A stretch of DNA of 64,000 nt. Source: Asterias rubens. Its lineage: Eukaryota. Position numbers and translations under genes: made by a program. A model generated the notes under the pieces. It did not search any database and had not been told where the DNA came from. It saw only the letters and a list, made by a program, of their open reading frames with translations. Below, in pieces: positions 9,601-56,169 of the stretch (its first letter is position 1; each line of letters begins with the position of its first letter). Location of the stretch: the NCBI RefSeq assembly GCF_902459465.1, contig NC_047064.1, positions 2,976,001 to 3,040,000 on the forward strand. The letters are read 5' to 3'.

Positions 9601-12600
9601 CTTCATCAAAATAAAAATAATACAAAATCTTCAAATCAACCGCGGTTGCGCTCGTGCTCTTTGGATCAACCGTTGTTAACCCGGAAGCTTAAAAACAGCT
9701 CAACAAATTGTCAATATTATGTCAGAAAACCCTAATCTTCCGTCGATGTGTCGCGTCATGGCTGATCGTGTCATGGAACTGACTAGGTTCTTGCCTGCAT
9801 GATTGTTAAAGGGAGTGTAGTGTATAATACTTAGTAAATACTCAACACGTTAATGAACTTAGTAAAGAATATTTGAAAGCTAGCTGTTGATTTAATAACA
9901 TTGTGAGAATCGACTCCTTTGAAGTAGTTTAGTTTTAGAGAAATGGAAGAAGAATTTCCCCTGAACATTTTTAGTCCGAGAAATGCTCCATCTAACGCAT
10001 CTGAAAACACACAATTCTAAGCAGCAAGAGTATTTTTTTCTTGAATAATTCAAGAAAAAATACTATATGCTGCTTAGAATTGCAATTCGATGGCCAATTG
10101 AACCCAAGTGTTCACAGGTTTGTTATTTATGCATAGTTGGGATATACCAAGTGAGGATACCTCTCTTAAAAATTACCAAGGTGTATCCTGCTTTTAACAA
10201 CATTTCTTGATGCAAACCAGTTGCTGTTTTTATTATAGGCCCTCTATCAACAGCTACTTTGACACATTTTTCTACTGAAGACGATCACAGCATACTGATT
10301 GAAACGTAGAATTGTTACACTCTTATTCAGTACCGCCACAATCCAAGAGCGAAAATGGTACCGCGGCAAACCCAAGTTTTTTAAATTGTTGCATATTAAC
10401 TGAAGACGATCGTTACATACTGATTTATACTTTAAATCGTTGAACCCTTTTCCATAATCCAAATGAGCGAAAATGTACCGCGATAGATCCCAAACTCTAG
10501 AATTGCAAGGGTCGTGGGTTCGAACCCCACCCGAGTAACATGCCTGTGATATTTTTTTCACGTGGCTAGGGAAAGTACTGAGTATACAGTGCTAACACAC
10601 ATCGGTGTATGGGTAAAAACCAAAATTAATATTCTTTATCCCCGATGCAAATTTAACATCTATTAGATCCCAAACTGTTTAAATTATTGCATATTTACCC
10701 TTATGTTTGTTCTTTTAAAACAGAGCAGTTGCTGAGGAACTGAAGAAAGGTAAACCTGTGACGGCTGAAACGTTTGAGAGTGTCACCATTTACTTTAGTG
10801 ATATCGTTGGTTTTACAAGTCTCTCTTCAGAAAGTACACCGTTACAGGTGAGTATCATAAGGCGGTCGAGTAAATTACAGGGAAACATTGCCTTCAGACC
10901 CGGTGCTTTTGTCTATAAAAGTATTTGCTTTTAAATGAACAGGCTGTGGTTGGAAAAACATTCCAAAAGTAGAATACAATTATCCACATAAATATCACTT
11001 GAAATTGTGTGATTTTTGGTCTGCTTTTTTGTAGAACCAACTCTTATAAGCTCACAAATTGTGTGGCCTTATCCTGACAAAAGTAAACCTGACAAAGGTA
11101 TTGGTAAATAATAATAACTTGTTTTCTTTGTTCCATCGTATAGGTGGTTGATCTGTTGAACGATCTGTACACCTGTTTTGATTCTATCGTCATGAACTAC
11201 GACGTTTACAAGGTGAGGGAACACTTTCGAATTTTTAAGGCACTGGACACTATTGGTGGTCACTGTTAGCATGTTAGTATATAACGTTGTGAGAAACGGC
11301 TCCCTCTGAAGTAACGTAGTTTTCGAGAAAGAAGTAATTATCCACGAATTTGATGTCGAGACCTCAGAATTAGATTTTGAGGTCTCGAAATCAAGCATCT
11401 GAAATCACACAACTTCGTGTGACAAGGGTGTTTTTTCTTCCATTATTATCTCGCAACTTGGACGACCAATTGAGTTCAAATTTTCACAGGTTTGTTATGT
11501 TATTCGTCTGTTGAGATACACCAAGTGAGAAAACTGATCTTTGACAATTACCAAAGGTGTGCAGTGCCTTTAAGCAACTTGATTCATCTTGTGTTCAGCT
11601 ACCATTTTAGGATTTATCAAAAGAGAGGTTTATACATCAGCCGCTGCGCAGCCATTTTTGTTTATTTCCCATTGACACCAGTGACATGAAACCGAGACTT
11701 GGTGGTGAAAATAGGAAATAGGTCGGTTCTTTTCTCTCGCTAGAATGGGTATCAGTATTCATAATAGCAACGTCATAATGTGAACACGCCAAAGAAATAC
11801 TGTCAGTAGACTTGGACCTAATGTGCTGAAAACTTCTCTGCAACTATGCACTACTTGCTTTGAAAATTGCATTGCATTGGAAATTAATCACCACTGCAAG
11901 TGGTTGTTGAAGTCAATCATCTGCCTGGTTAACACCGTTAGAGGTCGAGCAGCAAGGCGTTGAGGCCGGGTATTTTATTACAATTAGGTGACTATTTCAG
12001 TGATAAAAACGAGTTAAGAATCCACCAACCGTGCAGGGATGGTGCCAGCAAATCCCACACCGAAACGGCCCTGGAACAAGTATCAATTTTCTTGCCTATA
12101 TACAAAAATGGCTGATCCCGATGAGCTACGCATCAATCCCATTACAGTTTAAGGTCATCTTCCTCTATTGCGTGTGCTGCTAAGATATTATTAACAGGAC
12201 ACCTGCGTTCGGCTGATATTCGGTGGTCGTTAGTAGTTAATTCAGAGACAATATCCTGTCAAACGTTAACACTATTCGGTGAGTGATCCCCGGTGGATTG
12301 CAAGACTTGATCACTATCGTGATACCGGGTTGCGGTGCCTGTATCCGGCGGCGGGTCTAGATCGAGGCGGTCTGCTCCACCCCTAGAGACCCCGTACTTT
12401 CTGTAGATTGAATTACAAGATAGATCGAATATGGGTGATGATATCCAAAGTGGTTTGTTTCGCTATTTTTGGTTGGGAACTAGAGAGAATTACTGAATCG
12501 ATCCGTTTTCTTAAGATTGTTTTTAAAGGTATTATAATTGATTGGTATAAGGATAAGACAAGACTAGTCTTTGACAATTACCAATAGTGTCCAGTGTCTT

Positions 12601-44032: not shown

Positions 44033-44306
44033 AAATACCCGATGTGTTTAGTTTGAACTTTACATGCATGCTTTTTAAAAATCTCTGCGATTTGCAGGAA
44101 TGCTTCGTGAGAATTCAGCACATTTCAGCTGCTTGAATTATGTGATGTGCCTCGCTTTTTAGTCAAGGAAATACCCGATGTGTTTAGTTTGAACTTTACA
44201 TGCATGCTTTTTTAAAATCTCTGCTATTTGCGGGAATGCTTCATGAGAACTCAGCACATTTCAGCTGCTTGAATTATGTGATGTGCCTCACTTTTTAGTC
44301 AAGGAA
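44033..44306. repeat. 136-bp tandem duplication (2 copies)
   Basis: AAATACCCGATGTGTTTAG...TAGTCAAGGAA repeated with few differences. Confidence 0.9.
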
Positions 44307-44429
44307 CCTAAACAAGATTAACATCTGGGAAAATATTTAGATCAAAAATTGATGTTGTAAATGTATGTGAAGAATGGACAACATTGACAGCAAGGTGAGC
44401 TAATAACACTTGTTTGTTTATATATTTAA

Positions 44430-44730
44430 AACAGATGTTAAATTTGCATCAGGTATACAAGGAATATTATTTGGTTTTAACCTTGCACCAATGTGTGGAA
44501 GTATACTCAGTAGTATTTTCCCAGAGTCCTGTGAAAAAAATCCATAATCACCCGGTTGGGATTCGAACCCCACGAACTTTGCCACTGATATTGCCAGCAG
44601 CCCGAGGCAGCCTGAATCCTATTTTAACAGGGGGTACCGCAACAATGTTATTTTACATCAATGTTAAATTTGCATCTGGAAAAAGAATATTTTTTGGGTT
44701 TTTACCCATACACTGTGTGTAAAGCACACT
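44430..44730 (-). mobile_element. Older partial-tandem copy (~1.3 units) of the 258-bp element
   Basis: ATGTTAAATTTGCATC occurs twice; GGGATTCGAACCCCACG is the reverse-strand B box. Confidence 0.7.
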
Positions 44731-48580: not shown

Positions 48581-49334
48581 TATGCCCCTAGTGGTGTAAT
48601 AAAGCGCTTGATAAGAGCGCAGTTTTACTATTATTAACTGTTGTACACAGAACGTACAAATTCATTTAATAAAACCATGGTATACTCAAGTGTACAATAC
48701 CGAAAGGGCAATAAGTAAAAGGGACTGCCCTGGCTGACATGTGAACCAACCAAACAATAAACCATAAGTGCGCTGTGCGTTAGCCTCCTCCTCAGCCACT
48801 TCAAACAAATCACATGATTAAAATCTATAAAAAGGAAGTGATTTCCAGCAAAGGATCTCGTAATCTTTTTCGAGCAGCATTACTCGCTCGTACAGTCACC
48901 CCTATTTCTTTGTTATACTCCTAACTCTGATGCAGCGTTAAGCAAGAGCTCACTTCGATGAACATGTACATGTACAGTATTGCATCAATAATCAGAATGA
49001 AAAATACATTGTGTACCGGGCGAGACAGTATATTCAGTTAACGGTAGCAAATTAGATATCAAATACTAACTCTTCAGATTTCTTGCTCGTTGTTGTCAGT
49101 TTGGTCACGTAAGACTTAACAATGTTCGGTATTCATGCTATAATCTGAAGTTGTTCTGAGTGCTGCTTTGCATGGAGAAGAATTTTATACAGGTACGTGC
49201 ATCGTACAATTGCTCAGATGTATCCCAAGTGCTTTATTAAACATCGGTGAAAGATTTAAGGCCCGGTCCCACTGCAGCGATAACGAAAACAATAAAGATT
49301 ATAGGATTCATAAAGCGGATTCATAGGAAAGATC

Positions 49335-49795
49335 AAACATAGGATTCGAACTGCCTCTAGCTGCCGGGCAATCTCGGTAGTCTAGTTGGTAAGACACTGC
49401 TCTAGAATTGCAAGGGTCGTGGGTTCGAATCCCACCCGAGTAACATGCCTGTGATATTTTTTCACAGGACTCGGGAAGTACTGAGTATACAGTGCTAACA
49501 CACATCGGTGTATGGGTAAAAAACCAAAATTAATATTCTTTATCCCCGATGCAAATTTAACATCTATTATATCGTTGTGGTACCCGCTGCCAAAACATAG
49601 GATTCGAACTGCCTCTAGCTGCCGGGCAATCTCGGTAGTCTAGTTGGTAAGACACTGCTCTAGAATTGCAAGGGTCGTGGGTTCGAATCCCACCCGAGTA
49701 ACATGCCTGTGATATTTTTTCACAGGACTCGGGAAGTACTGAGTATACAGTGCTAACACACAACGGTGTATGGGTAAAAAAAAAACAAAATTAAT
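49335..49795 (+). mobile_element. Near-perfect partial tandem (~1.8 units, period 258 bp) of the tRNA-containing element
   Basis: Two units almost identical; flanked by AATAAAGAT (49291-49299, 49796-49804). Confidence 0.88.
49371..49442 (+). pseudogene. tRNA-like Pol III cassette (anticodon position AGA, short variable loop); second copy at 49629-49700
   Basis: D stem GTCT/AGAC, T stem GTGGG/CCCAC, B box GGTTCGAATCC, acceptor stem 5/7, anticodon stem 3/5; T-run about 15 nt downstream. Not a functional tRNA-Ser (no long variable arm, broken stems). Confidence 0.65.
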
Positions 49796-50191
49796 AATAA
49801 AGATCATGACACAAAGACAACGCATTCTTTTGGTCGAATTGCTCCACTCAGAATACGCACACGCTCATTCAACCAATGGAGTGTGCGTTGTCTTTGCGTC
49901 GTTATCGTTATCGTTATCGTTCTGTTATCGCTGCAGTGGGAGCGGGTCTTTTTTACTTGATTGTCTTTCGGACTTGATGTTTTCCATAATTCAACCATTG
50001 TAGCTGTCATGAGATGTTTTCATTTGAAGAAAAAGCAAATAATGATGAAAGATTTGTTAAGACTTGAAATGTATTATTTGTCAGTCTTATAATGGATTCT
50101 GCCCAAAATACACTGAAGAAAAATTGTGTTTGATTTGAAAAGTATTATTTATCAGTCTTTAGGCATAGAAAGCAGAGTCATTCCATCTTAT

Positions 50192-53030: not shown

Positions 53031-53927
53031 AAAGGAAACGCCTCTCAAGCCTGTAGATAAAGCGCTATATAAAAAAAAAGTTATTATTATTTTTTATTAA
53101 GAGAGGTATTGTTTTATTAATTGAACTTGATGTCATTTGCAGGAAAACTCATGTTGGACCTACATGTACATTAATGTACCCATTATGACAAGTGAGATAA
53201 ATTTTCTCCTAGTGCTCGTTGCTTGGTGCCGTAAACTTGTCCTCAATGTGATTCTGGTATTGTACAACAACAAATTGTCCAGTAAACATTTTGAGCTTCA
53301 AGCCCTTCGGTCTTGTGGATTTTGCCCCCGCATTCCAGCCTTGCATCATGCTGCATAATAAAACGTAGTTGTTTTGAAGTTTCTTCAATACATCATCAGA
53401 CAAATACAAGAATGACACTAGAAATGTTTATCGGCAAACATTATTAACTGACGCTCTTCTTGTTTGAACAGTGACAGCTTTTCATGACTCATGTTATGCT
53501 TCCTTGTAAAATGAGTCTTTTCTGAATAACATAGAAGGGCCATTAATCAAGTTATTAAAGATACATCATTTAATTTGGACATCTGGAAAGTACGCGTGAT
53601 ACACAAATTTGTTATTAAGATACATACCTTTTTTTTAAGGGAGACAAAGCTCAATGACACTAAAGGATGGACTTTGTATTATCTTCACATAAAAAGATGA
53701 ATCAAAAGACTTTTTTTTTTTACAGTAATTACTCAAACCTTAGTCCACCCTCTGTTTATGTTATTTGTTTATTAATTTAATAATTCATGCTATAAAGTGT
53801 CATGGTGTTGATAAACAAACAGTCACCATGTACTATGTGATATCACATACATGTTTACAAAAGAGCCACAGGACTTCCTACAGGCTCAGTTTGAACAAAA
53901 AGAAATGTGAAAGTGCAAAAACATTAA

Positions 53928-53969
53928 TCTCCTGAAGACTAGCAGAGTATACTGTTTGAAACGTTGAGA
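53928..53969 (+). ncRNA. Minimal type I hammerhead ribozyme motif 1 (GUU site at 53965)
   Basis: Stem I TCTC/GAGA, core CTGAAGA + extra C, stem II AGCAG/CTGTT with G10.1 mutated to T, palindromic stem III AACGTT. Confidence 0.5.
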
Positions 53970-54119
53970 CCAAACCGGCTCTTTTCAGAGCCACCACTCC
54001 TTCAAAAGAGATTTTACTCATGGTTGTACCCGCAAGTTTACTATTCATATTTATATTTATAGTTCCTCTTATGCAGAAACATTTGAACAAAAAGAAATGT
54101 GAAAGTGCAAAAACATTAT

Positions 54120-54161
54120 TTTCCTGAAGACGAGCAGAGTATACTGTTTGAAACGTCGAGA
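54120..54161 (+). ncRNA. Minimal type I hammerhead ribozyme motif 2 (GUC site at 54157)
   Basis: Stem I TTTC/GAGA, core CTGAAGA + extra C, stem II GAGCAG/CTGTTT (G-U pairs), GAAAC-GTC. Confidence 0.6.
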
Positions 54162-56169
54162 CCCAACCGGCTCTTTTCAGAGCCAACACTCCTTCAAAAG
54201 AGATTTTACCCTTGGTTGTTCCCGCAAGTTTACTATTCATATTTGTATTTATACATGTACATGTAGTTACTCTTATGCAGAAACATTGTGTCTCTTATAA
54301 AAATAGCACCTACATACGTTACCCTCGAATTTGAAATTGTTTTAAAAAGAATGTACAGTACCTTGCTTAAGAATTGCCCGGATGTACACACAAAACAAGA
54401 TACATGTACAGCGTTTATGGTTGGAGCCCCGTTCGTGCAAAAATAGAACATTTTTGCAAAATCAAGATACAATGTTTTTGCACCAACACAACGATATCCT
54501 TGCCACATGTTCACTAAGTGAAGACTAATTTGATCAATCATTTGAGTGATGGAAAATAATTGCTACTTACATTCTATTTTTGGTTTGATTCGTTATAATG
54601 TATGACCTGAGACAATAATTCTGCGAGTCATTACTTTAAGGGGAAGCAGACAAAGGAATAACATTGCCAAAAACTTGGTTTATTATAAACAAAATATTTC
54701 CATTTTTGTTATGAAAGTTTCATTCTTTATACCCATCATTATTTTGTACATGTATTTTATAAACTTCCTTCTAAGATTACATATTGCTCACATTTTTATT
54801 ACGTATATACAATTAGGAAAAAAAAAATCCTAAAAAATGATGGTGCAACGCAAGTTGGTAACACTTCAGATTAGATTTGAAATCATACCTGCTGGCGCTA
54901 TTAGCACGGAACGTGACATGGTTACAACTCAAAGTATTGTACGTGTGTGATCCCTGTCACACATTTTCCAAACTAAAAAATCTCAACCCTTGATTGGCAC
55001 ATCCTTTATTATTATTTGTTCAAAATATTAGCCAACTATCAAGTTGAAATAATAGCCAGGCAACCTATTATTTTCCGAGCCAGTAAACTCTCTTCCTTTC
55101 CCTAGTGATTACAATCTACCCCTCTCTCTCTCTCTGCCGCTCTTTTCTATATTAATGTTGCCAAGTGTACAATTCCCCCGTTGCCACCAAGGACCAGCTG
55201 TACACCTCTGCAGGCGAGGCGAAGCCCTCCCAATAAAAACAGCCAAAGCAAATACAATATGAATAAGGAGACCCCCCCTAGGACGCCTAGAAAGCCGTCT
55301 CTTATCCGTGCTGTCATCTCAAAGAGGAAAAGAAATCGTCCAGTGACATCTAACACACTCGGATGGGTTTCCCTCCCTTTGTTCTGAGAGTCTGGAGCTA
55401 CCTCATCAAGATGACAATGAACCGTCTCGGTTAAGATGATCATAAAAAAAAATAGGAAATTGATTTTGCAGTTTGTCTGGTGCGCCCGCCCACCGCATCT
55501 AAGGAGCTGTTACCACGTAATTGCATTACAGCGAGACGGGGGTATAGCTCCTTGCTTTATAATTAGGCAGTATGGTTAGCACCAGTGGAATTGGTAAGAA
55601 ACCAGTGGGGGACACACAAGGAGGCTCCTGAACGTATCCGGATGCGGTTGTCGGAGCAAAGCCGAGGGACCAACCACCTCGTCTACAGAGGAGTCAAATA
55701 AGACTGAGGACTGGCTCCTGTGGGTCTGGTTGTCATAAGTGATTCCGACGCCCATTTATCATTGACTTAATTTCTGGGACATTCAATGTCTCTTTTTGTC
55801 TGACTCTGGTGGAGGTGCAAAAATAAAAACAATGCAATGCCAGTATCTATTACCATTGTCATGGCTGGTGTATATATTGTGCTTTTAGCGAGGTGGGGAA
55901 AGTGTTATAGGCCCTTCCAGTTTCATTAAATCAGAACTTACGTCACTATATTGTGGATCAAATGAACCATCAAATGGTCTTTACATTGTAAGTCAAGTTT
56001 GTGAATTGTTATATTGCATTGTATGCAGGGTACTACAACTGTACATTACATGCACATAAACATTACTGTGAAAATTTGATATGTTTGTATTTATCTTTCT
56101 ATTTTGTAGGAATTAATTAGTGTAAACTGGTTAGCCTACCAACCGAAATGAACAGTGACTCTTAACAAG

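Follow-up and report, generated by a model that had tools for sequence, protein, structure and literature searches.

A young 258-bp tandem retroposon family with an internal tRNA-like gene in a sea-star genome bears the insertion scars of Penelope-like elements

Insertions of Penelope-like elements (PLEs) are highly 5′-truncated, often form partial tandems, often carry an inverted 5′-truncated copy at their 5′ end, and show a 30-40-bp 'tail' at one end only (PMC8557442). PLE integration is still undefined, and the published tandem and inverted structures and the 'tail' come without a mechanism. Animal non-LTR retrozymes are thought to be mobilised by PLEs, from an RNA that either exceeds the length of a single unit or is such a unit closed into a circle (Cervera and de la Pena 2020, PMC7229834; Li et al. 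2026 preprint, 10.64898/2026.07.22.740005). In two further reports (PMC2770079, PMC8490949), the schistosome repeats Sm-alpha and Sj-alpha (Ferbeyre et al. 1998) are described as SINE-like, about 335 bp long, dispersed as well as satellite-like, and equipped with a tRNA-Gln-like part; Sm-alpha also has a hammerhead. Here we compare with these systems a 258-bp repeat family of the sea star Asterias rubens. Because the family is short, very young and abundant, each of its insertions can be read from end to end.

The window analysed is a stretch of 64,000 nucleotides of contig NC_047064.1 (positions 2,976,001 to 3,040,000, forward strand). An earlier note, made from its letters alone, had described three loci of a 258-bp mobile unit with an internal tRNA-like gene. 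All three are present, at the adjusted coordinates given in the first three lines below, and the unit length is borne out by the family consensus. The features in the window are as follows, with positions on the unit written as q.

49336-49798, plus strand: partial tandem of 1.79 units, from about q2 to q201 of the second unit (blastn against the consensus, 98.5% and 96% identity)
10497-10663, plus strand: 5′-truncated monomer of 167 bp, from about q66 to q234-239 (blastn, 96% identity)
44427-44720, minus strand: old partial tandem of 1.3 units in two pieces, q165-255 and q76-237 (blastn, 76-78% identity)
49371-49443, plus strand: tRNA-like cassette of the first unit (Rfam RF00005, 48 bits, E 3.3e-9; ARAGORN cloverleaf)
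49629-49701, plus strand: second copy of this cassette, in the second unit (likewise significant in Rfam)
49448-49468, plus strand: 7-bp hairpin CCTGTGA/TCACAGG with a T6 run in its loop (49457-49462), read directly
49706-49726, plus strand: second copy of the CCTGTGA/TCACAGG hairpin
49503-49571, plus strand: 3′ module, a stem-loop (q169-216) and a 36-nt 'tail' up to site B (from arm 3′ ends, the MFE hairpin and RNA reads)
49572-49628, plus strand: linker from the canonical 3′ end to the next tRNA-like cassette (q238-258 and q1-36), found only in copies longer than one unit

The monomer begins inside the anticodon arm of the tRNA-like part, ends at site B, and is bracketed by an exact 13-bp target-site duplication (TSD), TAGATCCCAAACT, at 10484-10496 and 10664-10676. 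The old copy, in which the tRNA-like part is internally deleted, also ends at site B (tail ...AATTTAACATCT) and is about 69% identical to other old genomic copies. The earlier note had reported a common fixed 3′ end for two of the three loci and partial tandems at two. The tandem at 49336-49798 terminates at an alternative site A (q201, ...AAAATTAATA), 36 nt upstream of the shared tail, within an 8-bp TSD, AAAGATCA, at 49328-49335 and 49799-49806. Of the 13-bp and 9-bp duplications claimed earlier, the first therefore stands and the second is 8 bp long.

Two other repeats lie near family copies. A 47-bp fragment at 10264-10310, 190 bp upstream of the monomer, is 83% identical to the part of a Penelope tail repeat (53890-54275) that contains the hammerhead. 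The fragment is an element of its own and does not belong to the 258-bp family, and Rfam reports no hammerhead there at E up to 5. A 136-bp unit, present twice with 95% identity, occupies 44033-44306, 120 bp away from the old family copy.

Exact 21-22-mers of the 258-bp unit occur 1,446-1,825 times in the genome, far above chance, compared with 0 occurrences for reversed controls, and the family has about 2,000 copies, well over 1,500, in the 417.6-Mb assembly. A one-unit genome search returned 2,686 candidates; 170 matches were scored, and most of these were 92-100% identical. Many of the 68 complete units taken from 40 arrays had 0/258 differences from the consensus, and thus the family has been active very recently; the mean pairwise difference between units was 2.4 within arrays and 5.0 between arrays. 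31-mers of the element also occur in sequencing runs labelled as at least three related organisms and in marine metatranscriptomes. The 21-mer of the tRNA-like T-arm (1,825 copies) outnumbers the tail words, and many of its sites are without tail words (for example G000:C1:1217925, 1240565, 1246851 and 1260546), so the tRNA-like head may be common to another repeat family or to subfamilies with a different 3′ part. Array L071:339-1161 contains one unit 99% identical to the consensus, in register among units of 83-93%, which could mean either that a young copy converted an old array or that a unit was inserted in register.

Insertion ends were taken from two samples. The array sample comprised 40 distinct arrays with 58 arms and was picked by full-unit matches, so that multimers are over-represented; an unselected census of exact-motif coordinates over 20 Mb of contig 1, which rests on exact words, corrects this bias. 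The 3′ ends of 21 of the 58 arms fell at q197-209 (site A) and those of 29 at q230-242 (site B), placing 50 ends inside two 13-nt windows where 5.8 were expected. Site A corresponds to q201 (window position 49535) and site B to q235-237 (window 49569-49571, ...CATCTATTATA), 36 nt apart. The 5′ starts were scattered over q1-232, with no excess at the tRNA head (5 of 58 in q20-45, 5.8 expected) and a moderate excess in the A-rich stretch q166-207 (19 against 9.4 expected). An apparent preference for starts at q1-5 was set aside as a selection artefact of choosing full units; several such copies reach a few nt further upstream. Plotted on the 258-nt unit, as the earlier note had proposed, the 58 arms thus show varied starts and ends at two sites, and the pattern of an ordinary SINE, with starts at the tRNA head, was not seen.

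Of 39 arrays, 27 are flanked by direct repeats of 8 bp or more and 24 by direct repeats of 10 bp or more; mismatched-flank controls gave 3.1% and 0.27%, respectively. The TSDs are roughly 8-13 bp long, and the arrays that they bracket range from 1.3 to 8 units. Since the duplications enclose whole arrays of non-integer length, the tandems were made at insertion, which speaks against the alternative named in the earlier note, post-insertion unequal crossing-over only. A second, inverted and 5′-truncated arm, placed head-to-head, was found in 18 of the 40 sampled arrays. Around 15 of these 18 complexes a single duplication of at least 11 bp encloses the whole two-armed structure, which indicates that tandem and inversion arose in one insertion event. 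Wherever a complex had two canonical ends, one arm ended at site A and the other at site B (14/14, p ~4e-5), and the census gave the same pairing in 10-11 of 12 classifiable cases. Two simple routes to the inverted arm were considered and rejected: L1-style twin priming on one RNA, as the arm junction positions are unrelated to the start site of the other arm, and snap-back copying between arms, as the shorter arm of L065 has 63 junction nt that are absent from the longer arm.

The census covered 142 loci, of which 23 (16%) carry both strands, 22 of these 23 being head-to-head (p ~3e-6), and 17 (12%) are multi-unit. Genome-wide, 389 of 1,657 exact tail 22-mers (23%) continue into a next unit; the corresponding share of exact words is 55% for site A and 70% for a control site inside the unit. 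According to these rates, most insertions stop at site B, and about one fifth to one third run into another unit. The spread as partial tandems claimed earlier is therefore real but not the rule: tandems account for a considerable minority (12-25%), and roughly three in four loci have one unit or less.

We consider it likely that the 258-bp unit is a non-autonomous retroposon inserted by target-primed reverse transcription with a PLE enzyme (a reverse transcriptase, RT, with a GIY-YIG nuclease), and not with that of a LINE. This assignment is based mainly on the presence of all four published PLE scars (PMC8557442), namely 5′ truncation with a fixed 3′ end, a partial, pseudo-LTR-like tandem made at insertion, an inverted 5′-truncated copy directly at the 5′ end (18/40 arrays, 23/142 census loci), and a 30-40-bp tail at one end, seen here as two end sites 36 nt apart, one of each in two-armed insertions. 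The suggestion that PLE-type copying drives the family is in agreement with these scars, from which the PLE itself is inferred. TSDs, 5′ truncation and clusters of A>G changes, described below, indicate an RNA copy. Two further traits were looked for and not found: a 3′ end in common with an autonomous PLE of the same genome, for which two PLE families were compared, and the hammerhead in the repeat that is a trait of canonical Penelope/Neptune-type PLEs.

Two internal sites serve as starts of synthesis, A at the 3′ edge of an A-rich loop and B 21 nt after the stem-loop. Two-armed insertions have one arm begun at A and the other at B, which corresponds to the PLE 'tail at one end only'. According to the mechanism we propose, both nicked target strands would prime cDNA synthesis on the element RNA, and the RNA template would be longer than one unit, whether as a linear multimer, as a unit-length circle that is recopied, or through repeated template jumps.

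The MFE fold of the consensus contains the CCTGTGA/TCACAGG hairpin and the stem-loop at q169-216, whose A-rich loop ends exactly at site A and whose stem is followed 21 nt later by site B. As modelled, this stem-loop is a natural candidate for the RT recognition element. The old window copy appears to keep the hairpin of the 3′ module with different paired bases, which, with few diverged copies available, is only suggestive. RNA-seq data from 3 runs covered the family equally on both strands, with read numbers in the hundreds to thousands, compared with 0-25 in the flanks. Read depth increased toward the 3′ part and most reads passed into unrelated sequence, as expected for 5′-truncated copies inside host transcripts, and RNA reads from many loci diverged past 49569/49570.

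Ribozymes were searched for in several ways. Rfam cmscan of the 1.79 units, on both strands and with E up to 10, gave no hammerhead, twister, HDV-like or other ribozyme; at the gathering threshold over the window there was none within the element, and the region 10100-10900 likewise had none at E up to 10. Hand-checked CUGANGA/GAAA words were rejected, as the nearest ones, CUGAGUA and CCGAUGC, break the invariant core of the hammerhead.

The cassette at 49371-49443 has the A box TAGTCTAGTTGG, a perfect B box, GGTTCGAATCC, and the nominal anticodon AGA (ARAGORN). The A box, the perfect B box and an acceptor stem of 5 bp are all retained in the consensus, and the hairpin and the T6 run come after them. 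The earlier note had placed the cassette about 60 nt inside the unit and a T-run in the hairpin loop within about 15 nt of it. We found that the cassette starts 57 nt after the canonical 3′ end, that the unit extends 57 nt upstream of the tRNA head in every multimer, and that the T6 run starts 14 nt after the tRNA-like part; a T6-T7 run at this distance is kept in young, monomer and old copies. From its sequence, the T6 hairpin is a predicted Pol III terminator, and a Pol III product of about 95 nt from the cassette is plausible. Such a transcript would end before the 3′ end of the unit, as had been supposed, 75 nt short of site A and 110 nt short of site B. The element does differ from a conventional SINE in the way first proposed, as it does not start at the tRNA head and its T6 run lies 75-110 nt before the true 3′ ends.

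The cassette would thus be an intact Pol III gene with its own terminator, and its RNA of about 95 nt alone could not supply the template; it may give only rare read-through transcripts, or have another role. Many 5′-truncated copies are missing the cassette. Two arms, those of L016 and L079, terminate exactly at the T-run, which hints weakly at the existence and occasional copying of Pol III-terminated RNAs. Separately, the reverse complement of the B box, GGATTCGAAC, is present in the linker upstream of the cassette (window 49342-49352, q8-18), and the minus strand of the anticodon arm (q62-72) resembles an A box, TAGAGCAGTGT. The 258-bp unit may therefore have a second, antisense Pol III promoter-like pair, and pairing of the antisense box makes the predicted unit fold very stable (z about -6).

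A source of the enzyme appears to be at hand. The genome has an abundant, dominant resident PLE with many uninterrupted 921-aa ORFs and a tandem period of about 4.4 kb (L031-L060, e.g. L056; G000:C2:24069341-24074039), which is apparently active. It carries a minimal hammerhead (CTGAAGA...GAAA) about 20 nt before its 3′ end, ...CATTATAT, and strongly prefers (TA)n microsatellites as targets. A second tandem-forming family has a unit of about 316 bp in which a T5 run comes after a tRNA-Asn(GTT)-like cassette, forms partial tandems, and ends in ...TTATTTGATAT (L035:2372-2906, L035:103-374, L045:320-810, L059 and L057). This family abuts the 3′ ends of the 921-aa PLE within TA microsatellites, in direct and inverted orientation, a position that likewise speaks for an available enzyme. 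Its existence shows that a tRNA-like gene inside a tandem-forming unit is a recurrent design in this genome. One copy of the 316-bp family has itself been the target of a 258-bp array, whose insertion left a 10-bp duplication (L069:347-401 and 1364-1488).

Several points count against the PLE-type reading. Multimers are over-represented in the array sample, and RNA-seq gave no direct sign of a multimeric or circular transcript. The targets of the 258-bp family are not TA repeats, unlike those of the resident 921-aa PLE, and no autonomous element with the same 3′ module was found among two PLE families. Comparison of the unit with 30 PLE loci (blastn, word size 7) gave matches at chance level, as did Smith-Waterman alignment with shuffles against the tails of the two families, the 921-aa PLE and the repeat at window 53890-54275. 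The only sequence common to the unit and the 921-aa PLE was a gapped terminal word of about 14 nt, CATCTA..TATT..ATAT, and the arrays showed no systematic adjacency to PLE tails. The comparison of 3′ ends with candidate PLEs that the earlier note had called for thus yielded no match in the two families, and the PLE partner is assigned from the scars only.

Sequence variants within arrays give some indication of how the template is made. In array L068, 15 of 20 differences are A>G, with a sense-strand cluster of 7-8 changes; at L068:440-1260 (minus strand), two neighbouring units have 7 identical sense-strand A>G changes at q164-201, of which the upstream unit has none. The cluster has the signature of A-to-I edited RNA copied into DNA, and its repetition suggests that one edited unit-length sequence may have been copied twice. 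The same array jumps directly from q201 to q228, and a matching q202-to-q228 junction is present inside array L030. Array-specific variants are found in all units and both arms, such as 21C>A in 10 units of L065, and unit-specific variants occur in L064, L065 and L073. In both arms of L065, the unit second from the junction has a TG insertion, which could stem from one multimeric template common to the arms or from their conversion at a later time. Three observations favour reiterative copying of a single unit, by a circle or by template jumps: the family forms arrays of up to 8 units although most of its loci have one unit or less, private variants are common to all units of an array, and L068 has a duplicated edited unit. 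Linear heterogeneous multimers are favoured by the unit-specific variants and by the unedited upstream unit of L068.

One special case of the PLE-type reading, which corresponds to the 'circular' half of the idea in the earlier note, is a retrozyme without a ribozyme, in which the tRNA-processing machinery would free a unit RNA that is ligated into a circle and copied by a PLE RT in rolling-circle fashion. We regard it as possible but rather doubtful. The three observations that favour reiterative copying speak for it, above all the pair of neighbouring units with the same 7 A>G changes, which looks like the double copying of a single edited template of unit length. The ends left by RNase P and RNase Z, however, are not joined by RtcB. 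Further points against it are that Rfam found no ribozyme, that the tRNA itself is kept in every unit, that the 3′ ends are not at the tRNA borders, and that the upstream unit of L068 is free of edits while L065 and L064 have unit-specific variants. RNA-seq gave no specific circle signal, although short reads cannot separate circles from tandem or host read-through, nor reveal an RNA of about 95 nt. In its favour, animal retrozymes of similar size and GC content work via circles (PMC7229834). A stronger version of this scheme, that the tRNA-like module has replaced the hammerhead, so that host tRNA-processing or splicing and ligation enzymes would cut array transcripts at each tRNA mimic and circularise the pieces for rolling-circle copying by a Penelope-type RT, seems to us improbable.

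More unlikely still is a tRNA-derived SINE mobilised by a LINE, whose tandems would have formed later by unequal crossing-over or replication slippage and whose inverted arms would come from L1-type twin priming. Its tRNA-derived Pol III promoter, TSDs, 5′ truncation and fixed 3′ tail without poly(A) do resemble those of stringent-type SINEs, and most loci are of one unit or less. However, copies do not begin at the tRNA head and the T6 terminator lies inside the element, and TSDs surround non-integer arrays whose units still match the consensus exactly, so that there was no time for the arrays to expand after insertion. Twin priming on a single RNA does not account for the strict A/B pairing or for the positions of the arm junctions, and about 260 kb of examined sequence contained no match to a LINE tail. 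Least probable of all is spread at the DNA level, by re-integration of satellite or eccDNA or as cargo of a Helitron-type or other DNA transposon, for which the tandem organisation and a few arrays near whole unit numbers (L062, L067, L068, L065 and L079) could be cited, but whole-number lengths, considered as a sign of circular DNA or RNA, are not in significant excess (7 against 3.8 expected), neither terminal inverted repeats nor Helitron ends were found at the array borders, and the fixed 3′ and variable 5′ ends, the variable-length duplications and the sense-strand A>G clusters point to an RNA copy.

With two precise initiation sites, a rule of one of each, and TSDs around the whole structure, the 258-bp family is well suited as a natural, minimal substrate for in vitro tests of PLE reverse transcription. 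The family also indicates that retrozyme-like tandem retroposons can dispense with a ribozyme. Hundreds of intact Pol III promoter cassettes have been spread through host introns, many of them within head-to-head arrays from which hairpin RNA would arise. If the tRNA-like module did take the place of the hammerhead, the family would be a protein-processed, ribozyme-free counterpart of retrozymes, and the two sites 36 nt apart would reveal the priming of both target strands in PLE integration.

Among the papers covered by our literature search, none describes a tandem retroposon that is ribozyme-free, tRNA-bearing and of PLE type. Like SINE2/tRNA families, the 258-bp family has tRNA-derived A and B boxes, TSDs and a 3′ tail without poly(A), and it is unlike them in that the head is not at the 5′ end, the Pol III terminator is internal, the tandems are circularly permuted, and there are inverted arms and two 3′ ends. 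Among published repeats, Sm-alpha, which we set beside it by description, comes closest to joining a tRNA module to a retrozyme-type repeat; Sm-alpha bears an active hammerhead, whereas the 258-bp family is without one. Animal non-LTR retrozymes are similar in that their low-GC units are short (150-450 bp), occur in tandem, are dispersed in the genome and have duplications of more than 4 bp, and they are defined by a type I hammerhead in each unit, in place of which the 258-bp unit (no hammerhead by Rfam at E up to 10) has a tRNA-like cassette. In comparison with non-autonomous PLEs, such as MRC1 and other Chlamys elements (Craig et al. 2021, PMC8557442), the family shares the 5′ truncation, head-to-tail tandems, inverted copy and one-end tail, and, like Naiad and Chlamys PLEs, it is without a canonical hammerhead. 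Non-autonomous Chlamys PLEs have clear 3′ similarity to an autonomous family, whereas none was found here in the two PLE families compared. The non-autonomous PLEs in PMC8557442 are not reported to have a tRNA-like Pol III gene; the family described here carries one within a unit of only 258 bp.
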